DNA of 64,000 bases from Eutreptiella sp. 'Long Island Sound 2002' (taxonomy: Eukaryota; Protista; Euglenida). Positions 593-52,100 of this stretch are shown here, one piece after another. Under the pieces are notes generated by a model. That model did not search any database, was not told the origin of the DNA, and saw only the letters and a program-made list of their open reading frames with translations. Where the stretch lies: NCBI GenBank assembly GCA_964036045.1, contig OZ038379.1, forward strand, positions 4,092,001 through 4,156,000. Direction: 5' to 3'. Numbering within the stretch: position 1 is the stretch's first letter; the number at the start of each line of letters is the position of its first letter. Position numbers and translations under genes: made by a program.

Positions 593-1120
593 GGAGGAGG
601 AGGAGGAGATGCGGTCCCCCGGTAGGGCGCCCCCGCGGCACATCTCCATGGTGCCCGCCGGCCCCCCACGGTCTGGAAAGCGACCGGGAGGGAGGTTTCA
701 CCCCAACCCGTCCGGCTAAGCATCATGGCGGCGGCTCTCCTCTTCGTCTCCTCCCCTTGTCCCCTGGCCCGCGCTACGTGCATGCACCCGCCCTACACGT
801 AGCCGGATCCCCTCCCAGGGGCACGGAATGGGGGGCGAGGCGGAGCGCCGGCTCCACTTCCGGCACGGTCCACCACCCCCCCAAGGGAAGGGGGACGCAG
901 TCTCACGGGTGTGGGCCCTTAGCCGCCAGGTACTACCGACTGGGCGGCGTTTGGCCGGCGGATCACGGGGGCTTGGTCCGTGGCCCGGTCCCCCCCCCTC
1001 CCCCGGCGCACGGCACTTCTGCCGAAGGTGTCCGTGCGCGGGGCCATCCTCTAACCCTCCGGTCGTGTCCCCCCAATCCGCAGTGCCGCACGTCTGCGGA
1101 GGGGACACGCAAACCCCCGC

Positions 1121-2070
1121 CTCGGTGAATCCAAAGCGAAGGAGGCCCCCTCGCCTCAGCGGCGGGGGCCTCGGTGGTCCCAAAGCGAAGGAGGCCCCTT
1201 CGCCTCAGCGGCGGGGGCCTTGGTGATCCCACAGCGAAGGAGGCCCCCTCGCCTCAGCGGCGGGGGCCTCGGTGTCCGAAAGCAAAGGAGGCCCCCTCGC
1301 CTCAGCGGAGGGGGCCCCGGTGGTCCCAAAGCCAAAGAGGCCCCCTTGCCCCAGCGGCGGGGGCCTCGGTGGTCCCAAAGCGAAGGAGGCCCCCTCGCCT
1401 CAGCGGCGGGGGCCTCGGTGGTCCCAAAGCGAAGGAGGCCCCCTCGCCTCAGCGGCGGGGGCCTCGGTGGTCCCAAAGCCAAAGAGGCCCCCTCGCCTCA
1501 GCGGCGGGGGCCTCGATGGTCCCAAAACGAAAGAGGCCCCCTCGCCTCAGCGGCGGGGGCCTTGATGGTCCGAAAGCGAAGGAGGCCCCCTCGCCTCAGC
1601 GGAGGGGACCTCGATGGTCCCAATGCAAAAGAGGCCCCCTCGCCTCAGCGGAGGGGGCCTCGGTGGTCCCAAAGCCAAGGAGGCCCTCTCGCCTCAGCGG
1701 AGGGGGCCTCGATGGTCCCAAAGCCAAAGAGGCCCCCTCGCCTCAGCGGCGGGGGCCTCAGTGGTCCCAAAGCCAAAGAGGCCCCCTCGCCTCAGCGGCG
1801 GGGGCCTCGATGGTCCCAAAACGAAAGAGGCCCCCTCGCCTCAGCGGCGGGGGCCTTGATGGTCCGAAAGCGAAGGAGGCCCCCTCGCCTCAGCGGCGGG
1901 GGCCCCGGTGGTCCCAAAGCCAAAGAGGCCCCCTCGCCTCAGCGGCGGGGGCCTCGGTGGTCCCAAAGCCAAAGAGGCCCCCTCGCCTCAGCGGCGGGGG
2001 CCTCAGTGGTCCCAAAGCGAAGGACGCCCCCTCGCCTCAGCGGCGGGGGCCTCGGTGGTCCGAAAGCCAA
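1121..2070 (+). repeat. 49-bp tandem array (about 19 copies), each unit containing a GC stem-loop
   Basis: Consensus GGTGGTCCCAAAGCGAAGGAGGCCCCCTCGCCTCAGCGGCGGGGGCCTC; the GAGGCCCCC / GGGGGCCTC inverted repeat is present in each unit. Confidence 0.95.
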
Positions 2071-3659
2071 GTGTGGGGGAAGGAAAAATACCTGGCGAAC
2101 CCACGGGGCGTCCCTATCCCTCCGCGGCCCAGGCTGGACCGGAGGGACTCGGGTGTAACCGCCGCTGTGTGGGGGAAGGAAAAATACCTGGCGAACCCAC
2201 GGGGCGTCCCTATCCCCCCGCGGCCCAGGCTGGACCGGAGGGACTCGGGTGTAACCGCCGCTGTGTGGGGGAAGGAAAAATACCTGGCGAACCCAAGGGG
2301 CGTCCCTATCCCCCCGCGGCCCAGGCTGGACCGGAGGGACTCGGGTGTAACCGCCGCTGTGTGGGGGAAGGAAAAATACCTGGCGAACCCACGGGGCGTC
2401 CCTATCCCCCCGCGGCCCAGGCTGGACCGGAGGGACTCGGGTGTAACCGCCGCTGTGTGGGGGAAGGAAAAATACCTGGCGAACCCACGGGGCGTCCCTA
2501 TCCCCCCGCGGCCCAGGCTGGACCGGAGGGACTCGGGTGTAACCGCCGCTGTGTGGGGGAAGGAAAAGTACCTCACGACCCCACGGGGCGTCCCTATCCC
2601 TCCGCGGCCCAGGCTGGACCGGAGGGACTCGGGTGTAACCGCCGCTGTGTGGGGGAAGGAAAAATACCTGACGACCCCACGGGGCGTCCCTATCCCTCCG
2701 CGGCCCAGGCTGGACCGGAGGGACTCGGGTGTAACCGCCGCTGTGTGGGGGAAGGAAAAATACCTGGCGAACCCATGGGGCGTGCCTATCCCCCCGCGGC
2801 CCAGGCTGGACCGGAGGGACTCGGGTGTAACCGCCGCTGTGTGGGGGAAGGAAAAATACCTGGCGAACCCACGGGGCGTCCCTATCCCCCCGCGGCCCAG
2901 GCTGGACCGGAGGGACTCGGGTGTAACCGCCGCTGTGTGGGGGAAGGAAAAATACCTGGCGAACCCACGGGGCGTCCCTATCCCCCCGCGGCCCAGGCTG
3001 GACCGGAGGGACTCGGGTGTAACCGCCGCTGTGTGGGGGAAGGAAAAATACCTGGCGAACCCACGGGGCGTCCCTATCCCCCCGCGGCCCAGGCTGGACC
3101 GGAGGGACTCGGGTGTAACCGCCGCTGTGTGGGGGAAGGAAAAATACCTGGCGAACCCACGGGGCGTCCCTATCCCTCCGCGGCCCAGGCTGGACCGGAG
3201 GGACTCGGGTGTAACCGCCGCTGTGTGGGGGAAGGAAAAATACCTGGCGAACCCACGGGGCGTCCCTATCCCCCCGCGGCCCAGGCTGGACCGGAGGGAC
3301 TCGGGTGTAACCGCCGCTGTGTGGGGGAAGGAAAAATACCTGGCGAACCCACGGGGCGTCCCTATCCCCCCGCGGCCCAGGCTCATCCGGAGGGACTCGG
3401 GTGTAACCGCCGCTGTGTGGGGGAAGGAAAAATACCTGGCAAACCCACGGGGCGTCCCTATCCCCCCGCGGCCCAGGCTGGACCGGAGGGACTCGGGTGT
3501 AACCGCCACTGTGTGGGGGAAGGAAAAATACCTGGCAAACCCACGGGGCGTCCCTATCCCTCCGCGGCCCAGGCTGGACCGGAGGGACTCGGGTGTAACC
3601 GCCACTGTGTGGGGGAAGGAAAAATACCTGACGAACCCACGGGGCGTCCCTATCCCTCC
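2071..3659 (+). repeat. 96-bp tandem array (16.5 copies), highly homogeneous
   Basis: Unit starts GTGTGGGGGAAGGAAAAATACCTGGCGAACCC at 2071, 2167, 2263 ... 3607 (partial); exact 96-bp period. Confidence 0.97.
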
Positions 3660-4354
3660 AGTTGCGCAGCCAGGCCAGGTGCACATTGCCCCATGACCTG
3701 TGACCGGGGGGCCTCCCCTTATTTCAAAGCAATTCATGGGGAGACTGACTGCCGGAGCTGCCGGCAGGTGCCACTGCCCCGGCGTAGTGAGCACCGTAGC
3801 GGCAGGCACTGGCCCTTACCTCCGCCCCGATGCTGGCTCCCCTTTATTCCACCACCTCCCAGCTCCGGTCCAGGCATCCCGCCGGGTGCAGCAGGGCGCG
3901 TGGCTGTGAGGCCTGATGTCACGGTTGCCCCGCATTGCATCGCAGGGCAGGACCGGTAGCCCCCCGTGACATCAGGCCCCTGGCCGGAGGCAATAGTGGT
4001 TGTGCCCCTGGCCCGGACGGGCGTCGGATAGGACGATGTCCCCACCCCACGATGTACCTGTGCAGAACACAAGGTGCAGTGGGTTGGGGCAGGGGAGCGC
4101 ACACGAGCCCTGGAGAGGGCTGGGTCACAGGGGGACCCGGGTTACTCCCGCATACCGCCACCCCCCGGTGGAGCCCGCCCTGTGCCATCGTGGCTTTCCC
4201 ACGGTGGCCGGCGAGGGGTGGGGCGCGCGATCCCGTGCCCTGGCCGCCGCGGCTGGACCAGGGCACCCCCCAGATTGCGTGTTAGCCCGGGGGGGACCCC
4301 CCCCGGTTTCACCCCCACACCACGGTGAGGTCACGCGCCCCTGGGCAGCTGTGG

Positions 4355-4357
<3 letters not shown>

Positions 4358-4431
<74 letters not shown>

Positions 4432-4452
4432 GCACACACACACACACACACA
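4358..4452. repeat. (CA)n microsatellite
   Basis: About 47 CA units. Confidence 0.97.
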
Positions 4453-5133
4453 TCCACCCACCCCCTCGCTCCCTCGCTCATAGCACTGAAGGCAAACAGT
4501 ACCGAGGCCCTCCACCCCCTGCATCTGCAATGGGTGCATCTTTGTTGAAGGATCAACGAAGAGACGGATGGTGGCGTCATGCGACAGATGTGTGCCGAGG
4601 GCTGCTCGCATGGGCCCGATGGTGAAGTGCATGGACCCCCCACCCCCTTCTCCCGGAGCTTCATACCGTTTTGCCGTTGGCTTTCCGTGCTTCCCGTTGT
4701 CAAACGGACAACACCACCGGTCTACCCCACCATCGCCTCCGGGGAGTTGCCCGCCGCCGGCAGCTGCATGCCCCGGTCTTAAAATGCTCACCGCTGTGGG
4801 TCAGGGGCCTTCGTTGATTGGCGGCTAATTGCCCGGGGAGGGGGGGGGGGGGGACTGAAGAGCACCAACCAATACTGCCTCCGGTTGGGTGGTTTCTAGG
4901 CTGGCTGCCGATGGACGGTGGCGGGTAACAGACGGCGGGTTGATGGGTAACCGACCCTGCACAAGATGCGGGGGCGAGAGGGAGGGGGGGGGGTCAGGGT
5001 TCTTCAAGAAAACAAAAGAAGGGCCTTCTACAAGAGCCCCTTGAAACAGGAGCGTCCTGATGGCGAGTCGTCGAGGCCGCCCCCACCGCCCACATCCCTC
5101 GTGCCGTGGACACGACGGACACCGTCCCGTCGC

Positions 5134-14197: not shown

Positions 14198-14613
14198 AAG
14201 GGGGAATCTTTGCGCTGCGAGTGCACTGCGCACTACTTTTAGAATAGATTTCCCCCCGAAGAGCCCCCAGGCACACCCCTTCCAAACGCCCTTAAAATTA
14301 GGCGACCCCAACTACCCTAGCCTTGGGGTTGCAAAGTAGCTGAGGGGTATAGAAATTGCAATCTGACATGGAAATTTTTTCGCTTTTTTTCACTGAAAAA
14401 TGTTGCATCCAAATTTGATGGGGTTTACTCAACTGAAACTTGTTTGTGCTGGAATTCATTGTACCTGAACATTGTGTACTGACACAATATCACACAATCA
14501 TGTCAGACATCTAACATCAACATCGCGCGTAAGATGCCCAGAGCATCACAAAGTATGGTTTCTAGTACAACCATATGCCCAAATAGTCGCATTGCGCGTG
14601 CACTGCGCTTAAG
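14198..14613 (+). mobile_element. Solo copy of the TIR-less GGGGGAAT...GCGCTTAAG element family
   Basis: Starts AAGGGGGAATC, ends TGCACTGCGCTTAAG, AAG at both ends. 5' about 110 bp matches 28361 and 30156; 3' about 60 bp matches 25497, 29217 and 30806. Confidence 0.75.
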
Positions 14614-16825: not shown

Positions 16826-17950
16826 GTAATCAAGCAAAAGGCATAGCAACAGAAGCAACCCCCCCCCCCCCCCACGACAACCAGGGGCCCCGCCACCGTG
16901 CACTGCTGACCCGCATCTTCCCGAGACACGGCGCCGCGCTCAATGGCAGAGGCCAGAGGCTGAAGTGGAGGGAGGGCAGGAATCGTGTCGGGCACCGGGC
17001 CCATATCAGCAGCGCCACCCCCGGCGGACTCCTCCAGCGGCCACGCCGCCATGGACAGTCACCACAGTGGACAGACACAGGTGGTCACGACGGTCGCCGT
17101 GCCCCACGTACAAATAAGGCGGGTAAATCGCACCAACCGGCCGTCAGCCCCAGCCGGACGCGGAGTGAGGCAGGCCCAAAAAGGTCTCCGCCGTATCCAG
17201 GTATCCACCACAGGGTCCACAACCTAATCCCAGCCCCAGAGGGATGTGCACCGAGGTAGCAATCAAGCAAAAAGGCAGAACAAACAGCAGCACCCCCCCG
17301 CCCCCCCCCCCACGACAACCAGAGGACCCGCCACCGTGCACTGCTGACCCGCATCTTCCCGAGACACGGCGCCGCGCTCAATGGCAGTCCCCAGAGGCCG
17401 AAGTGGAGGGAAGGCAGGAACCGTGTTGGGCACCAAGCTTACATCAGCAGCGCCACGTCCGGCGGACTCCTCCGGCGGCCATGCCGCCCCGGACAGCCAC
17501 CACAGCGGGCAGATACAGGCAATCACGACGGTCGCCGTGCCCTGCGGACAAAGAGGCGGGCAAATCGCACCAACCGGCCGTCAGTCCCAGCTGGATGCGG
17601 AGTGAGGCTAGCCCAAAAAGGTGAATAAATAAAGCACCCAGCGGCCGTGCCGCCAACCAAGTAAAAAGACAACAAAACAGGCGCACCCAGCGGCCACGCC
17701 GTCAGAGTCACCCTCTGCAGAGGGCAGATACAGGCGAACACGACTGTCACCGAGTCTCACTGATGGTAAAAGGCGGTCAGTCCCAGCACCCGGCCGTCAG
17801 CTCCAGCGGAACGCGGACCGACGCAGCCCAAAAATACAAAACCAAATCAGCACCCAGCGGCCAAGCCGTCAGGGACACCCACTGCATGGGCAGGCACAGA
17901 CGACGACGACAGTCGTCAAATCTCACGGGTTGAAGAGGCGGGCAAATTGC
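16826..17950 (-). repeat. 3' repetitive region of the YR element: two about 436-bp units plus degenerate subunits
   Basis: 16873-17016 and 17311-17454 each match 21001-21145 inside the YR ORF at roughly 85-90% by eye. Confidence 0.85.
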
Positions 17951-18510: not shown

Positions 18511-19317
18511 CTAGCATCCCCGGAGACACACCACCCCCCTCACCCGAGCCTCGCCCAGATTTTCCAGCAATGCATCCCACGTGCACCAAGCCTCGACTTC
18601 CGCTCTAGCCTCTGAGCCTCCGAACACTGACGTCACCCTGGACATAGGGTCTCCCGGCTGAAGCGCCGAGGGCACCCACACGAGGCGGAGCACGATCCCT
18701 GATACCCACAGGACCCTAGCCAACGACCAAAGGACCGTTTGGTGGTGGGTCAGGTGGCTAGTCGCGCGCAGTCTGAGGACCTGAGCAATGGCCGCCTCAC
18801 TGTCGCTACACACCGTAACAGATCGGTGTCCTGTCCTAACTGCAAACCTGACAGCCCACGCCACTCCCCTCAGTTCCGTGGTTTGCTGGCTGGCAAAGCG
18901 GGCAGGAGGTGTCACATGCGTACGCACACCCACTCCCGGCACGAGCGCCCCCACCCTCCAGCACCCCGCATCGCGCGCTCCATCGACACAGATGACGACG
19001 CCCCCGCACCACAGAGAGGATCGCGAAAGCCTGTCCTCAGTCCCAAACTGGAGGGCCCTCAATTGCCGCCAGGCCTCCCCGCCCGGCGCCTGCCAGGGCT
19101 CGGCCGCCACCGCCACCAATGTTGCGAGGCTGCCCAGCATTTTCAGGGGGAAGCCCTGGGCCGGCTGTTTGACCCCCCCCACCGTCCTACCCCAGCGCAA
19201 CCAGCAGTAGGCGCCCTCCGCGAAAGGGCAACCCAATCCCCTCGGACGCACATGCCAATTCAGCAAACCCAGGAGTCTTTGGAGGTGCCGGTCGTTGCCT
19301 GCGCCAACCGCCAGCCC
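18511..19317 (-). CDS. RT connection plus RNase H (separated from RT by a 1-nt frameshift near 19315-19317)
   Basis: LQRLLGLLNW; RNase H tetrad CVDGA / TTELRG / CSDSE / PGDPMSR; LVWVPS. Confidence 0.9.
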   Translation of the reverse strand, partial: GLAVGAGNDRHLQRLLGLLNWHVRPRGLGCPFAEGAYCWLRWGRTVGGVKQPAQGFPLKMLGSLATLVAVAAEPWQAPGGEAWRQLRALQFGTEDRLSRSSLWCGGVVICVDGARDAGCWRVGALVPGVGVRTHVTPPARFASQQTTELRGVAWAVRFAVRTGHRSVTVCSDSEAAIAQVLRLRATSHLTHHQTVLWSLARVLWVSGIVLRLVWVPSALQPGDPMSRVTSVFGGSEARAEVEAWCTWDALLENLGEARVRGVVCLRGC

Positions 19318-20494
19318 ACAACTGGAGCAGTGCTTGTTCATGGCTCCTGATCTGCCTAGCCTGCAAGTCGAGCTCCTTCCCCAGGAATGACGCCACAGGC
19401 ACCGGGTCCAGGACACTCTTAGGACTTATGAGGAACCCAGCCCAGATCAGGGCACGCACTGCCACTCGCCCCGCCTCCCTGAGCACCTCCCTATCAGTGA
19501 AGACGAGCAAAAAGTCATCGAGGTAGTGCACAAGGAGTATCTCGGGGGGCAGTACCCCCTGGAGAATGCGAGCCAAACTCATTTGGCACAGATAGGGGCT
19601 GTATTTCCAGCCAAATGGCAGGCGCGACAGCGCCACAGGCGGAGCCCCGGGGGCGGGCCGGAAGCGAAAAACCTGGCGCGCACCCTGGGGCAAGCAAAAG
19701 CTCCAGAACGCATTTTTGAGGTCAATGTGGAGGCCGTAGAGGTCCACATCAGGCGGGAATGCCGACAAGGACCTAGCCAAATCCTCCCAGGAATCCAATC
19801 TAAAAGTGGGGGGCTTGCCCCCGTCACTCTTATTGATCTTGACGCAACTCAAGATCAAGGATACCTTCTCGGAGGATTTGGGGATGACGAAGGGGTAACA
19901 CGTGGGGGGGGGGGGGGGGTCAGCCGTCTCCTCGTAGACCCCCGCCCCCCTCAACGCCTGCACTATCCTCTGGACCTGCTGCGACACCCATCTGGTGGCC
20001 CCTCGGACCACCCTATCCCCGTCCTGCCACTCCCGCTCGACGTCAAAATCCTGGAGCCCTCCGCGGTAGAAGGGCGGTACGACAGCGTCCCACAGATCAT
20101 CAGGGAGCTGGTGGGAGCCTATCGGCCCCAATCCCCGGTCCAAAATGGCATCCTCGACCCCCGCCATGAACCGCGGAATGGGGGAGGTGTTGATATGGAG
20201 GCATGCCTCCCAGGCATCCGGGTGGAGCTTGCGCAAGGCGCCCAGGAGAGCGGGTAAAGCCCCCTGCAAGCGGAAATCCTCGGCTGTATCGAATACTCTA
20301 TTCAACCACAAATCCACCCTCTTCGCAACCATCCACAAGCCACAACGTTCCCGCTCGGCTATCCAGTGAAAATGGGGGGTGAGTGCCTGCATGAACTCCA
20401 GGAAGAGGGGGGGCTGTTCCTGCACCCTCCCACCCCTGTCGGGACCCTTACAGAGGGGGGGGGGGGCGACGCCACTGGGCTCGCCCGCCCCCAA
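19315..20494 (-). CDS. Reverse transcriptase
   Basis: YPFVIPKS, HIDLKNAFWSF, LPFGWKYSP, HYLDDFLLV (19514-19525), SFLGKELD. First ATG at 20392; the frame is open from about 20512. Confidence 0.95.
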
Positions 20495-22167
20495 GCCTTG
20501 GCCTTGAGACGCTCAGCTGCAGCCACGAAGGCACCCTCCACCGGGCCTTGCGCCTCCGGCGTCCGGACATGCCCGCCCTGCCCGAGCTTGATGCGCTTGG
20601 GCTTCGGCGTTCCGATCTGCTGGGCCAAACGAGGTCCCCCAGCTTGACGGCGTGCGGGGGCTCGGGATCGCACGGCCTGCGTACCACCCAGGACCACCTT
20701 AGCGCGACGCGGCCCCGTGTATGTTCGGTGGACACGGCCCACCACTCCAGCTTTCGAGCCCGCTGCGGGTCCTCTTCTGACAGGGCCAACGGCTGCCCTG
20801 GAGGACCACGGCTTACGCTCCCGCCCAACGAACTTGGCAACTCCGGCCTGTCGACGCCCGGGGGAGCCCCTGGCGCTGCCGACTACGAATTCGCCAGAGG
20901 GCTCGCTTCCGGAATCCTCGCTGTGGTCGTCGGTGTCCACGTCGGAATCGACATTGATGGGCCCGGCTGCCGTCCCCGGCCCGCACGCCCCCCCCCCCCC
21001 CACGGCAACCAAAGGCCCCGCCACCGTGCACAGCTGACCCGCATCTTCCCGAGACACGGCGCCGCGCTCAATGGCAGAGGCCAAAGGCGGAAGTGGAGGG
21101 AGGGTAGGAGTTGTGTCAGGCCCCGGGCCCATCTCAGCAGAGCCGTCCCCTGGGGATTCCTCCAGCTCGGTCGCGGTTTGGTCTCGGTCGCCTCCTCCCC
21201 CAAGCGTGCCGCTCGCAGTGGATTCCAGCTCCTGACCTCGCGGAAGTCTCGGCTTGCGCTTGGTCGGGGTGTTAAGGGCGCTCGCGATACTGGGGAACAT
21301 CGGGGATCCCCACAGGGCCAGGACGCCCACGCGTTCCGGAGTCGGCAAAGGCCCCTGGTCACGGGACCATGCGGGCAGCACCGTAGGGGCAACGACTCCC
21401 GGGTCTGACCATTTGGTGCCGTATTGCATCGCCACGGCCGTGCTCTGCCATCTGCCCCACCATTTGTAGTAGGCGAGGTCTGGTTTACGGGCCCAAGTTG
21501 CTGCGGCGCCTCCCCTGCGCAGGGCGTGCCACCTGGCTCGGGAGTGGGCGGTGCTCGCCAGGGTTTCGGCCATGCCTGCCTCCAACCCCGCTTCCCCTGA
21601 CTGCCAGACGAGCATGTCTGAGGATCGGCCCAGCGAAACCATGTGGCCATGAAGCCACGCCCGGACGCCGTCCGCATACGTGTACAGGGGGCGGGTGGTG
21701 TACCCCTCCTCCCCTGTCTTGGAGTTCAAGAACTGGACAAAGCCTGGCATAGCCAGGTCAGTAACCCTGATGCCAGCTGCTTCGCCCGCCCGTAGGTAGC
21801 ACACCCAGCTGATGATGGCCAATGCGCTGAACACCGCTCCGTGTCCGGAGTCTCTGGCCTTTTCGACCAGCTGGACCAAGCCTGCTGGGGACAGATAGGG
21901 CTGAGAGCCTGAGGATGCGGCTCCCGCCGCAATCCTTTTGTGCAAGGTGGTGACTGTTGGGGGCAGCCACTGGAAGTCCTCCACGGCCCGGACCGCGGAG
22001 GTAATACCCCGCAGGGCCGACGCTGTAGCGCCGGCTTGCGCCCGCTCTGCCAGGAGGCCTGCCAGTGCCGCGGCTGTATCAGGCGGGCCCGTGCGGTCCG
22101 CGTAAGCCGCCAAGGCCCGGAGTTGGGACGCGTACTGCGAGCGGGTTCTCGGTCTCCAGGACTGCAT
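20359..22167 (-). CDS. Tyrosine recombinase/integrase (602 aa from ATG; in frame with gag) with a long low-complexity C-terminal linker
   Basis: Catalytic set R (CYLRAGE), K (NSKTG), H-x-x-R (WHALRRGG), W (GRWQS), Y (AMQYG). Confidence 0.93.
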   Translation of the reverse strand: MQSWRPRTRSQYASQLRALAAYADRTGPPDTAAALAGLLAERAQAGATASALRGITSAVRAVEDFQWLPPTVTTLHKRIAAGAASSGSQPYLSPAGLVQLVEKARDSGHGAVFSALAIISWVCYLRAGEAAGIRVTDLAMPGFVQFLNSKTGEEGYTTRPLYTYADGVRAWLHGHMVSLGRSSDMLVWQSGEAGLEAGMAETLASTAHSRARWHALRRGGAAATWARKPDLAYYKWWGRWQSTAVAMQYGTKWSDPGVVAPTVLPAWSRDQGPLPTPERVGVLALWGSPMFPSIASALNTPTKRKPRLPRGQELESTASGTLGGGGDRDQTATELEESPGDGSAEMGPGPDTTPTLPPLPPLASAIERGAVSREDAGQLCTVAGPLVAVGGGGACGPGTAAGPINVDSDVDTDDHSEDSGSEPSGEFVVGSARGSPGRRQAGVAKFVGRERKPWSSRAAVGPVRRGPAAGSKAGVVGRVHRTYTGPRRAKVVLGGTQAVRSRAPARRQAGGPRLAQQIGTPKPKRIKLGQGGHVRTPEAQGPVEGAFVAAAERLKAKAWGRASPVASPPPPSVRVPTGVGGCRNSPPSSWSSCRHSPPIFTG

Positions 22168-22302
22168 GGCGCTTTCCTCCGGTGAGCAGGGGTCGTCTGA
22201 CCGGGCTGCTGTCTCCCACCGGCGGGCGAGCGCCAGCAGCTCTGCCGCCGTGTCCGCAACGCCGGAGCCCGGGGCGGCCGGTCCGGGCTCCAGCCGGTCC
22301 TG

Positions 22303-22935
22303 TCAGGACCAGTGTGGGCATCTAAAGTGCCAGTGGCGTTCGTCGGGGGAGCCCCGCTGCGCGCACCTCTGGCACCCTCCGCTCGGCGGCGAGTCCACAG
22401 GGATCCACTCGCCCTGCCTCGACTGCCATTGCAGTACTCCTCCCACCTCCCTGAATTTCACGTTCCGCCACGTGAACGCCGACCCTTGCTCCTTCCATGC
22501 CTCCTCCAGCGTGGTGTACTGGTTGGACTCGGAGCTGGATTTCCCGTGCGTCCCTGCATACCTGCGGGCATACGCCGCCTGGGACTGGGACACGCAGTCC
22601 CAGACCCTCCACGCCAGCTGCTCTCCTGGGTCGACTGCGGCCTCCGTCGCCTGGCCGCCAAACTCACTTGGTCGGGGGATCTCCCCCACCTCACCAGCTC
22701 TAAGGCGTACGTACGCCTTGATGTTGGACAGCATGAGTCTCATCCACTGTGCCAACTGGGGCTTCTCGAGGGCTCGGTTTACTTCTGGCACGCTCAGTGG
22801 GGGCAGGCGGGGCCCCTCCTTCACTGCCACTCGGGCGAGTTGCTCTCTGAGTTCTTGAATTTCTTTGGCTTGTGCCGCCAGCCGCTCCTCGGCTGACTCT
22901 TGTTGGTTCTGATTAGGCTGCTCAACCCCGTCCAT
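22303..22935 (-). CDS. gag: Gag-like ORF1 (210 aa) with N-terminal coiled coil and C-terminal zinc knuckle
   Basis: EERLAAQAKEIQELREQLAR coiled coil; CQRC-x9-H-x4-C at the C-terminus; first ORF of the element. Confidence 0.7.
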   Translation of the reverse strand: MDGVEQPNQNQQESAEERLAAQAKEIQELREQLARVAVKEGPRLPPLSVPEVNRALEKPQLAQWMRLMLSNIKAYVRLRAGEVGEIPRPSEFGGQATEAAVDPGEQLAWRVWDCVSQSQAAYARRYAGTHGKSSSESNQYTTLEEAWKEQGSAFTWRNVKFREVGGVLQWQSRQGEWIPVDSPPSGGCQRCAQRGSPDERHWHFRCPHWS

Positions 22936-25047: not shown

Positions 25048-25561
25048 AAGGGGGAATGTTTGCCTGGGGCACACCCGGCGCGCTACTTTTCTAGGTACTA
25101 TCCCGACTTCAGCCCCTACATAACCCCTGCATTCTCGGGGGTCCCCAACAAAGGGGACAAATTCAAAAGTGGCTACATAACCCCTGCCTTGGAAAAGTTG
25201 ATTCATGATGAGGCATTGGCAAAAAAAAAAGGAAAGAAACATTTCCAGCCCCATACCACCAATATCACCTGGTCACCCAACGCTGTCAAAATGAGGGATT
25301 CAGCCCGGGATTTTCAACTTGCAGGTGCAGCGCACCACCAACTAGGGTGCTAGCCATCTCTGACAACTGGTGGTCAGAGATGGGATACTAATTTTGTGCT
25401 ACCTGAAAAGTGCCAAATTTCGCCCATTTTTGAATTCTCCTACAAATTCCGACTATATTAATTCTAGACACATGGGGTGAACACACATTTTTTACCCAAA
25501 GTATGGGGTTCTGGGACGGCTAGACGCCCAAATAGTTGCACTGTGCGCGCATTGCGCTTAC
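25048..25561 (+). mobile_element. GGGGGAAT...GCGCTTA family element
   Basis: AAGGGGGAATGTTTGCC start; CCCAAATAGTTGCA...TGCGCTTA end. Confidence 0.75.
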
Positions 25562-25564
25562 TAC

Positions 25565-25775
25565 AACAGACTGTGCGTACCTTGGACTCTGGGATTGCAG
25601 TCCATAGCACAGATAAGCACCAACAAGCATGATTCAGGTCCACCAGTTTTTCGACAAACCAGTTGCACACTCGTCCATAATAGTGCCCATGGCACGTGAA
25701 GTGCTGCCTTGTCATTTCGTCCCGATAATAGTGCATGACAACCAGGAGAAACCCTCGACCCGCGGGTTTACTCGG
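25565..25775. repeat. Dispersed repeat; inverted copy at about 51150-51358
   Basis: About 210-bp reverse-complement match (ccatggcacgtgaagtgctgccttgtcatttcgtcccgataatagtgcatga...). Confidence 0.85.
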
Positions 25776-49100: not shown

Positions 49101-52100
49101 TACATCTGCTTTGCTTGTGCACCCGACCTCCTCCCCTACCCTCTTGTGCCCACCACTTCGGCAGCCTCCTTCCTCCGCCTGCACACCCATGCTTGCGCTA
49201 TTCCTGCCGCCGCACCACCCGTGCATTTGATGAGTTACCATCTGTAGTTGTGTGTGTTTCTGTGTGTGTGCGCTGGACGCGCTGTGCCCTGTAGCTCACC
49301 TACCGAAGGGCAGGTAGACGCGGTTTTGGCTCTGTTCCTGCACCCTGAGTCTCTCCCTGGGCCTGCTGTGCGCACCCGATTGATCTTCCAATATCCAAAA
49401 AGAGTTGCGGCACATCTCAGAGCAATAGCACGGGCATGTGTTGGCCGCCGAAACGTGAATCTTCACCCAAACCACCCTGCCTTTCCCTCTGAGGCAAAAT
49501 GCCTGGCAATGCTGCGCGCCATTGATGTTACATTTGGGGATGCGGATCCCCCTGGGCCCTGTGTGACAGTTCCCACATCATTTGTGGTGGTGAGCACCCT
49601 CCAATTCTTCAGTGTATTGGGAACGACTGAGTGTGACGCCTGCGTGGGCGTGGGAGTGAACGCCACGGAAGCAGAAGCAGCACCGGTGAGCAGAGGCACA
49701 ACTGCCGTGTAACAACACTCTCGTGTACAAAAATGCGTCCCCCCATTGTCTGGGGACAAACAATGTCAACAATTTCCTCCTGAACCCCCGAAAAAGTGTG
49801 CACACACGGGAATACCAACCAGCACATTTACTGAACCTTTATGCCCCGCTCTTTCTCTGGGCCATATGTAATGGTTTAGTCTGACATGAGATCAGGAGGG
49901 TGCCAGTGCCTTGAAACCCGTCCCCTCTCCCTCCTCTCCTCCACTGGGTGGGTTCTCTTGCTTTGTTGGTGCTCTTCTACACAGTTGTGCTGCCAGGGCC
50001 TTCGAGCAAGCCACCCATGTCAGAAGGCTTTGGCCCAAAGCTTTACGACCCCGTCGACCTCTGGTTCACATACGATATTTATCCCTCAAACTACGGTGTT
50101 ATCGATGGCGGACGTCTTGGGGTAAATGTAGGGCTCGATCCACTTGAGGAGTTCAAAACGACTACGGTCGACGTCAATTTCGGTTCGATGTGGCGCCCAA
50201 TCTGGTTCACGAGCACGTTTGACCCCGTCGATCATTCGTGGCACGTCTCCAATCCGACTGTTCTTGAGCAGTATGGATTCGCTCAGATTCTTACCTGTAT
50301 GTTGTGTGCGCAGACCCTGAGGTAGATGGGAGGCTACTCGTGCAGCCCTGTGGGTAACAGGGCTCTACCCGTGAGGCACGCACAGACCAGGCACATGGCC
50401 TGTGGCAGATAGCACGGCGCTTTGGATTGGAAGGCATGTCTCTCAGGGACGGCCGGTTTTGTGCCAACTTTGTGGGTTTTTGCTGGTCACCGTCATTCTT
50501 GCCTTATTTGTGCTCACTGGGTTTCGAGAGGTAGGGGTATGTGGGGTATATTCAGAAAGCCCTTGAAAAGGGCTATTTGGAACACGGGTCTGCATGCTGT
50601 ACTGACGACATGTTTGAGATTTTCGCCCGTTTTGGACGGTGCCTGTGTTGCTTGCTGCCTCTTTTTGTCAACAGGCAGCTACCATGTCTACATACAGTGC
50701 GAATCCTAAAGATTTGCGAAAATATTTAATTCCCGGCACAGGGTCTTGTTGTCCGCAAAAAAAATAAAACACAAAAAAATATTAATTTTTGGCATCATGC
50801 CTTCCGCAAAAATGGGTTCCGCAAAAAAAATCGCAAAAATAAACTATTTTTTGCCCCTACCCCTCCTTTTGCAAGAATTCCAGAATTTCGGGAGGGATGC
50901 TGAGTTTGCCCCGCTGCTTGTTGCCCCCCCCCCCCCCTTTTCCGTGTTTCATGCCCCATTTTGCACCTTGCTTTGCTTTCAGAGAATGATGAATCAGGGA
51001 CCACGAATCAGGGCATCCAGGATTGTCACAATATTAGGTATTTCAATCCAGATGCTGATGTGCCCAAAAGCAGATAAAAGGGCTGGTTCGGGACATTTGA
51101 TTGCCAGTCCATCTGTGATTCGAATTTGGTTGTTGGTTGTTGGTAAAAAGGAGTAAACCCGCGGGTCGAGGGTTTCTCCTGGGTTTTCATGCACTATTAT
51201 CGGGACGAAATGACAAGGCAGCACTTCACGTGCCATGGGCATTATTATGGATGATTTTGCAACTGGTTTGTTAAAACTGGTAGACCTGAATCATGCTTGT
51301 TGGTGCTTATCTGTGCTATGGACTGCAATCCCAGAGTCCAAGGTACACACAGTCTCTTGCAGTAGCAACAAAAGGAATCAACCCCAATCCCCAAACCGCA
51401 AAAAAAACAAAAAATTTTGGTGCAACACCCTACGTAAAAATGGGTTCCGCAAAAGGAATCGAAAAAATAAAATAATTTTTGCCCATTTTGGATGCCGTTG
51501 CAAAAATTTTGCTTATTATTAATTCAAAACACGCAACGCAAAAATTAGGATTCGACGAATCTTTAGGATTCGCACGGTACAAATTCACTCCATGGGCTGT
51601 TGCTTCCCCAGATGCACCACAAAAGCCTTTGGTTCGCAAAAGGGCACGCTCTGGGGGTGAAACCTGGAGGAAGGTGACTCGGGAGCCTGCCAGGCAGGCC
51701 AAGAAGCCTCGTACAGCCGGTTCGCAGCAACCTTCATGCACCCACAAAGAGCACGACATTCTGACGACCGCTGAGGCCACCGCTTTTGCTGCCCAGTTTT
51801 GGGATGGAAAGACACACCCCACCAAGGCTTCGCAACATATGTCCCTGTCCACAAACAGGGGGATGTCTGCCCTAATGGGGTCCCAGCCCTGCCTGAAAAA
51901 GGGAATGCTGACGATGACAGTGATTCAGAATAAAAATGGATGAATGGTGCAGTGCCATGTTTGTGTGCACCGTCCAATGTGTTGTGCTACGCTGAAAAAT
52001 GTGACCCCCCTAACCCCAACCCATACATTTCTGAAATGGCGTTTTCTTGCAGATTTCAAAAAGTATACACATACCCCCCCCCCCCCCCCCTCGGTGGTTT

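Follow-up and report, generated by a model that had tools for sequence, protein, structure and literature searches.

In the gammaretrovirus murine leukemia virus (MuLV), a single in-frame stop codon separates gag from pol and, with a spacer of ~8 nt and a stable downstream RNA structure, allows the fusion protein to be made as a minority product. Readthrough sites of the alphavirus/coltivirus type have a UGA codon followed ~8 nt later by a long stem-loop, with no pseudoknot, and among them the structure is conserved and the sequence is not. To our knowledge, the control of the structural-to-enzyme ratio is essentially unstudied in retrotransposons of the DIRS order, whose open reading frames (ORFs) are usually called separate or overlapping. 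In Tca2, a Ty1/copia long terminal repeat (LTR) retrotransposon of Candida albicans, gag, UGA, and pol follow one another in one frame with a predicted 3′ pseudoknot, and bypass of the stop was inferred genetically (PMC2194720). Here, we describe an in-frame UGA between a gag-like ORF (ORF1) and the tyrosine recombinase (YR) of a retrotransposon on the minus strand of a 64,000-nt stretch of the euglenid Eutreptiella sp. 'Long Island Sound 2002' (GenBank assembly GCA_964036045.1, contig OZ038379.1, positions 4,092,001 to 4,156,000; hereafter, the window). Programmed readthrough of this codon, producing an ORF1-YR fusion, appears to be the best explanation of the sequence comparisons below, and we regard it as moderately probable.

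Readthrough is preferred because an invariant UGA and a shared open frame occur together with conserved coding sequence that lacks a start codon and a recurrent RNA structure at typical spacing. The sequence-only reading of the window had proposed such a fusion. Comparison supports it through the stop, the frame, coding sequence upstream of the first ATG, and a recurrent hairpin, whereas the H-type pseudoknot of that proposal is not supported. The sequence features on which that proposal was built (the end of ORF1, the TGA, the spacer, the stem and loop, the GCCGCC/GGCGGC complement, and the 45 open codons) are all present at the positions listed in Table 1.

Fourteen copies of the element were compared, consisting of the window and 13 further copies, and these fall into seven diverged lineages. 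Lineage A includes the window, L001, L004 (two copies), L005, and the decayed L008, and lineage B includes L002 and L003. Lineages C (L006) and D (L007) are each represented by a single decayed copy, lineages E and F by L009 and L010, respectively, and lineage G by L011 and L012, which are Logan contigs of other runs. Identity of ORF1 to that of the window is 39% in B, 33% in E, 34% in F, and 20% in G. A TGA occurs at the homologous site, directly after the ..HW[HF][FI].CP..[SA] knuckle, in all 14 copies and all seven lineages, which confirms the expectation of an invariant stop among family members and excludes a private mutation of the window. In the same copies, the recombinase-frame ORF ends variously in TAG, TAA, or TGA. 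The UGA-C context that had also been put forward does not hold generally, as the base following the TGA is C in lineages A, D, and E, A in B and C, and T (U in the RNA) in F and G.

The element is highly repeated in the ENA assembly ERZ25074135, where its recombinases form 38 clusters and its ORF1 proteins 44, the largest cluster having 244 members. Contigs from runs carrying two organism labels put the word depth over the element at tens of thousands. At the TGA site, no variant with a share of at least 5% was found among the variants listed (~1160 contigs), beyond which there are 44 weaker variants. No fused ORF1-YR was found among the 38 recombinase clusters or among the 150 listed representatives of 401 matches, and the only matches of the ORF1 search (44 clusters) that run past the stop are decayed copies with a deletion or frameshift. 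These observations support the view that the in-frame stop is present beyond chance expectation and is probably under selection.

An ordinary sense or selenocysteine reading of UGA in this host would make the stop only apparent. TGA is not a sense codon here, because the 857 sense codons that make up ORF1 and YR include no TGA, whereas the other two frames contain 5 and 10; TGA also closes the recombinase-frame ORF in several copies. Another possibility, that the stop is not bypassed at all, is difficult to reconcile with a family that is very abundant and has many near-identical copies, since its recombinase must be expressed. Taken together, a UGA decoded as an ordinary codon or never bypassed is scarcely credible.

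In all five lineages that have an intact copy (A, B, E, F, and G), ORF1 and the recombinase lie in the same frame, which is open between them, in agreement with the earlier claim that gag and YR share one frame. This persists although the linker between the two proteins varies in length and cannot be aligned between lineages. In the window, the recombinase frame remains open for 647 codons past the UGA, and the first ATG is codon 46.

The recombinase was modeled using AlphaFold2 on 24 diverged homologs, with a mean predicted local distance difference test score (pLDDT) of 88.9, and the model was searched for similar folds using Foldseek. The top matches of the whole model are Cre, XerH, and lambda integrase, over ~325 columns, while nothing significant was found in Pfam or in a PDB sequence (profile) search. 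The alignments show almost no variation at R171, K195, and H259, and R262, W285, and Y294 could also be assigned from them. On this model, the protein encoded past the stop has the Cre/lambda-integrase fold of a tyrosine recombinase.

The region between the stop and the first ATG belongs to this protein. In the model, residues 1-15 past the stop are disordered, and a helix of residues 18-33 (mean pLDDT of ~95 for block 21-30) opens the N-terminal domain of the recombinase. Trp29 (codon 22218-22216) is invariant in nine sequences from diverged lineages, and neighboring residues are also conserved, while the position of Met46, the first methionine in the window, is occupied by A, I, or V in other lineages. 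Because Trp29 and helix 18-33 are conserved upstream of the first ATG and Met46 is not, the 45 open codons are coding sequence. A test of codon-position bias in the linker gave no guidance, with 6, 5, and 8 changes at the first, second, and third positions, respectively. In lineages A and E, there is no ATG between the stop and Trp29, and a recombinase initiated at AUG would therefore be without a conserved structural element, the W29 helix, in lineages A, B, and E.

This last point bears on the possibility that the recombinase is translated from a separate mRNA, arising near the junction through an internal promoter or spliced-leader trans-splicing, with the shared frame being merely historical. 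Trans-splicing is common in euglenids. The junction of Tca2, for its part, has promoter activity (PMC2194720). A start at the first AUG of such an mRNA would, however, remove the invariant W29 helix in the three lineages just named, and a separate mRNA explains neither the conserved TGA nor the shared frame nor the recurrent hairpin. A single 155-nt metatranscriptome contig crosses the stop and hairpin, and only two thin runs contain any of the element; neither loose ends nor joints occur at the junction in this RNA coverage, which is far too thin to judge by. We consider a separate mRNA distinctly unlikely.

The RNA following the stop can form a hairpin in each lineage. In the window, the 70 nt past the stop fold to -38.6 kcal/mol, and the 12-bp stem is part of this minimum-energy fold; the hairpin itself encodes linker residues 4-15 (LEPGPAAPGSG). 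Each lineage has a hairpin of its own, unalignable with those of the others, that starts ~6-14 nt past the stop. When the 70 nt past the stop were ranked against other 70-nt windows of the same element, the fraction of control windows that were as stable was 0.008 in lineage A, 0.19 in B, 0.76 in C, 0.05 in D, 0.02 in E, 0.03 in F, and 0.000 in G. A second test took the best hairpin with its 5′ base 6-14 nt past a given position and compared the stop with ~3100 other positions per element. Here, the fraction of positions with a hairpin as good was 0.008 in A, 0.16 in B, 0.19 in C, 0.011 in D, 0.05 in E, 0.04 in F, and 0 of 3104 (<0.0004) in G. A hairpin was thus found in seven of seven lineages, in five of them within approximately the top 5% of positions, and the Fisher combination of the seven ranks is ~1e-6.

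The 12-bp hairpin of the window, which the sequence-only reading had singled out, is within the top 1% of the element's hairpins, although 22 of 200 dinucleotide shuffles fold as well (z = -1.37). The conserved 8-nt spacer proposed with it is not supported as such. The first helix of at least 7 bp starts 9-11 nt past the stop in lineages A, D, F, and G, giving a length of ~8-10 nt in these four, while other lineages differ (in the minimum-energy fold of B, this helix begins later or is nested). Lineages have no spacer sequence in common, and the spacer differs even among close copies (2/8 positions vs. L001 and 3/8 vs. L008).

Within lineage A, the core 9 bp of the hairpin are kept in every copy, with mismatches only at terminal pairs, and the changes that do occur keep the pairing (C-to-U, which gives G-U, and G-to-A, which turns U-G into U-A). 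The hairpin differs at 3/34 positions from L001 and at 4/34 from L008, compared with 11/36 and 13/36 in the immediate flanks (p ~0.03 each). It therefore evolves ~3 times more slowly than its flanks, which is notable because what it encodes is a disordered linker. This difference appears only in the finer split of hairpin and flanks, and a conservation profile in 30-nt windows showed no island at the junction. A search of the window against Rfam gave nothing at the gathering threshold, and the junction yielded only noise.

A further proposal was that readthrough is stimulated by a MuLV-like H-type pseudoknot, in which the 12-bp stem is joined by a second stem between GCCGCC in the loop and GGCGGC downstream. 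Both complementary segments are present, and the complement is kept in the closest copies, L004 and L005; L001 retains 5 nt of it in register, and L008 has lost it. Composition-preserving shuffles give a 6-nt complement of the loop to the next 40 nt in 31% of cases, which places stem 2 at chance level, and no loop-to-downstream complement above chance was found in lineages B, D, and F. The minimum-energy fold instead pairs GGCGGC within a small local hairpin, and the 11-nt loop 3 would need to cross the 12-bp stem 1. The second stem, shortened or lost as it is in diverged copies, was not upheld, and stimulation by such a pseudoknot is very improbable.

Several observations weigh against readthrough, and the first of these concern the structure. 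The junction is 70-81% GC in most lineages (80% in the region of the window), and dinucleotide shuffles fold almost as well as the native sequences (z of 0 to -1.5 across lineages). Depending on the lineage, 3-50% of GC-matched control windows reach the same stability (20% for the window). The structural evidence is therefore only modest and largely compositional, the excess beyond GC reaching a z of approximately -2.6 to -2.9 with the lineages combined. The covarying stems that had been expected upon alignment did not appear: there are only single pair-preserving changes and no double, fully compensatory ones, and the lineages are unalignable across the hairpin. In addition, the main helix of lineage E does not start until ~23-24 nt past the stop.

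A second set of adverse observations concerns layout. In the single copies of lineages C and D, the recombinase is shifted by +1 within 70-90 nt of the stop, beside homopolymer runs (C10 and G14 in L007). These copies also carry further stops, and both lineages are uninformative on frame because their only copies are decayed or mis-assembled and the homopolymer lengths are uncertain; unreliable homopolymer lengths in a long-read assembly may explain the apparent shift in L007. A very distant recombinase lineage of the same genome (L026:1991-4704, in a 57-member cluster) has an ORF1 of 323 amino acids (aa) with a canonical CCHC knuckle that ends in TAG, and its recombinase has its own ATG 39 nt past this stop in the -1 frame. 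Because L026 is laid out differently, the in-frame UGA is a trait of the clade and not obligatory for such elements. The Tca2 junction, which contains a cryptic promoter, gave no readthrough in yeast reporters (PMC2194720), and architecture alone is for this reason not proof of mechanism. The case for readthrough is well supported by comparison but unproven.

The remaining adverse observation is that an NTG codon lies within the first five codons past the stop in all five intact lineages (CUG in A, GUG in B, CUG in E, UUG in F, and AUG in G), and the gene caller chose these codons as starts. This would suit termination followed by reinitiation, or a non-AUG start, whereby some 40S subunits resume nearby and produce free recombinase that includes the N-terminal helix, with no fusion. 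Reinitiation after a long ORF is known from several viruses, according to a review (PMC10275272), and given the little codon-position bias of the linker, its first codons need not be translated. Reinitiation needs no shared frame, yet the frame is shared in five of five intact lineages; if translation restarts right after the stop, this could be ancestral inertia. NTG codons are also common in GC-rich coding sequence (an estimated ~0.4 per five codons), and their distance to the hairpin is inconsistent (0-10 nt), whereas the distance from stop to hairpin clusters at 8-10 nt. The uniform choice of TGA would be left unexplained as well. Reinitiation or a non-AUG start is unlikely on balance, although we rate it above the other alternatives to readthrough.

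Two junctions have structural features of their own. In lineage D (L007:3438-3477), the hairpin past the stop is formed by the C10 run paired with the G14 run and starts 8 nt past the TGA. In lineage E (L009:2955-2985), the first 45 nt past the stop are rich in G-tracts (GGGGG, GGG, GGGG, GG, GG, and GGG), which could form an RNA G-quadruplex that replaces the proximal hairpin.

Under programmed readthrough, most ribosomes translating the full-length RNA would halt at the UGA that closes ORF1. A minority would decode it with a near-cognate tRNA, stay in frame, and cross the short disordered linker into the recombinase, yielding an ORF1-linker-YR fusion as a minority product by analogy with retroviral Gag-Pol. 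The GC-rich hairpin 8-10 nt past the stop, which also encodes the linker, probably raises the frequency of these events. We infer the occurrence of readthrough, its stimulation by the hairpin, and the ratio of the two products from the features described above.

More tentatively, UGA readthrough may be an ancestral and selected strategy of the whole VIPER-like clade, perhaps including kinetoplastid VIPER, that is served by lineage-specific linker hairpins, in which case it would be the first recoding signal of the DIRS order; we hold this wider claim to be quite possible, though not probable. A degenerate DNA pattern for the C-terminal knuckle of ORF1 gave 13 matches in metagenome contigs, all of them chance (stops in the upstream frame), and a scan of IMG/VR with the recombinase alignment found no relatives.

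The protein upstream of the stop is termed Gag by its position and its Cys/His knuckle only. The knuckle is at the C-terminus and is of the CX2CX9-10HX4C type, with long spacing. The predicted structure of ORF1 (pLDDT 78.6) has a long N-terminal helix, a helical body, and a small beta sheet. Its homologs form the 44 protein clusters in ERZ25074135, most of which end at the same residue. No Pfam family was matched, and the model had no significant fold match in PDB and no match to a capsid, so that the earlier designation of this ORF as gag holds for position and knuckle but has no counterpart in family or fold.

In this tyrosine-recombinase retrotransposon, the genes run in the order ORF1 (gag-like), YR, reverse transcriptase (RT), and RNase H, an order based on the RT ORF and the weak RNase H-like ORF found downstream (Table 1). 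The tail of the recombinase-frame ORF differs in length and stop codon between copies, and the open RT frame overlaps this ORF by 154 nt in the window. RT is also located downstream of the recombinase in most related loci, and the frame that it takes varies, with -1 to the recombinase in most copies and +1 in lineages G and D. Expression of RT may involve a second recoding event in the element.

Table 1. Coordinates of the element's features in the window, numbered from its first letter.
Feature	Position	Strand	Details
ORF1, gag-like, 210 aa	22306-22935	minus	C-terminal end ..HWHFRCPHWS
In-frame UGA between the ORF1 and recombinase frames	22303-22305	minus	proposed recoded (leaky) stop; next base C
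8-nt spacer, stop to hairpin	22295-22302	minus	CAGGACCG
Hairpin, 12-bp stem and 10-nt loop	22261-22294	minus	arms 22294-22283 / 22272-22261, one G-U; loop 22282-22273, ACCGGCCGCC, containing GCCGCC at 22278-22273
GGCGGC, 3′ arm of the suggested pseudoknot stem 2	22244-22249	minus	complementary to loop GCCGCC; not supported as functional
45 sense codons, stop to first ATG (22167)	22168-22302	minus	residues 1-15 disordered linker; residues 18-33 helix
Tyrosine recombinase core, to ~residue 340 past the stop	21283-22167	minus	R171, K195, H259-x-x-R262, W285, Y294
Low-complexity C-terminal tail of the recombinase-frame ORF	20359-21282	minus	ends with TAG at 20361-20359
RT ORF	19187-20494	minus	Pfam RVT_1, E = 6e-13; -1 frame vs. 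recombinase
RNase H-like ORF, in a further frame	18511-19416	minus	weak Pfam RVT_3 match, E = 0.0021, under the curated cut-off

RT frames of 0 or +1 occur in some lineage-A copies too; the loci considered on this point besides the window were L004, L005, and L009. In a Logan contig of lineage G (L011:884-3583), the RT frame, at +1 relative to the recombinase, is open from 884, which is 20 nt before the ORF1 stop, and spans the whole recombinase ORF with an overlap of 1304 nt. A similarly extensive overlap of YR and RT has been reported for VIPER and DIRS1, and the one here may also be no more than a GC-rich open frame.

Several repeats are present in and around the element. A 268-nt repeat has two copies close to the element's 3′ end (16847-17114 and 17285-17552, 87% identity) and a third inside the recombinase ORF (20975-21242, 70%), and might be part of the element's terminal or internal repeat system. 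Elsewhere in the window, adjoining tandem arrays at 981-3810 consist of 49-nt units (~20 copies) followed by 96-nt units (~17 copies, 97-99% identical), and (CA)n microsatellites are found at ~140-600, 4360-4460, and 46140. An inverted repeat pair of ~185 nt (25559-25743 / 51182-51364) is 93-96% complementary across a distance of 25 kb, and a 64-nt repeat family has members at 14548, 25497, 29217, 29911, and 30805.

If readthrough does occur, the recombinase would be delivered as a minority fusion to ORF1, as Pol is to Gag in retroviruses, which suggests co-packaging with the RNA or cDNA. At least seven unrelated hairpin sequences would then serve the same stop, providing a natural set for working out what a readthrough stimulator needs. 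The conserved and presumably leaky stop also prompts a re-reading of trypanosomatid VIPER and TATE annotations. As described in PMC5146736 and PMC6681497, these kinetoplastid elements share the order of gag-like gene, YR, and RT/RNase H with the element here. In the consensus coordinates given in PMC5146736, VIPER ORF1 occupies 169-1509 and the YR gene 1510-2517; by arithmetic, the two are contiguous and in one frame, split only by the ORF1 stop. VIPER is likened to our element by published coordinates and gene order alone, and its ORF1 has 446 aa compared with 210 aa here. Both papers make no mention of readthrough, and a full-text literature search found no published description of recoding for DIRS-order elements (DIRS, Ngaro, and VIPER), in keeping with the sequence-only reading, which knew of none in DIRS, VIPER, or TATE elements.

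Tca2 shares an in-frame UGA and a predicted 3′ structure with the element described here, but is an LTR element. Similar to MuLV, one in-frame stop splits a structural from an enzymatic ORF, a spacer and a downstream structure follow, and a minority fusion would be expected. Unlike MuLV, in which the stop is UAG and pol encodes protease, RT, and integrase, the element here ends its first ORF with UGA, has no conserved spacer sequence, and has a proposed stem 2 that is unconserved and no better than chance expectation; the enzyme encoded past its stop is a tyrosine recombinase, with RT located further downstream in another frame. The arrangement of a UGA followed ~8 nt later by a stem-loop, with no pseudoknot, is like that of alphavirus/coltivirus sites. 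It differs from these in that the stop may be followed by C, A, or U, the stem-loops cannot be aligned from one lineage to another and are of modest significance once GC is controlled, and the host element is a DNA-integrated retrotransposon of a protist. The readthrough proposed here is a known kind of recoding, in a class of retroelements for which we found no earlier description of it.

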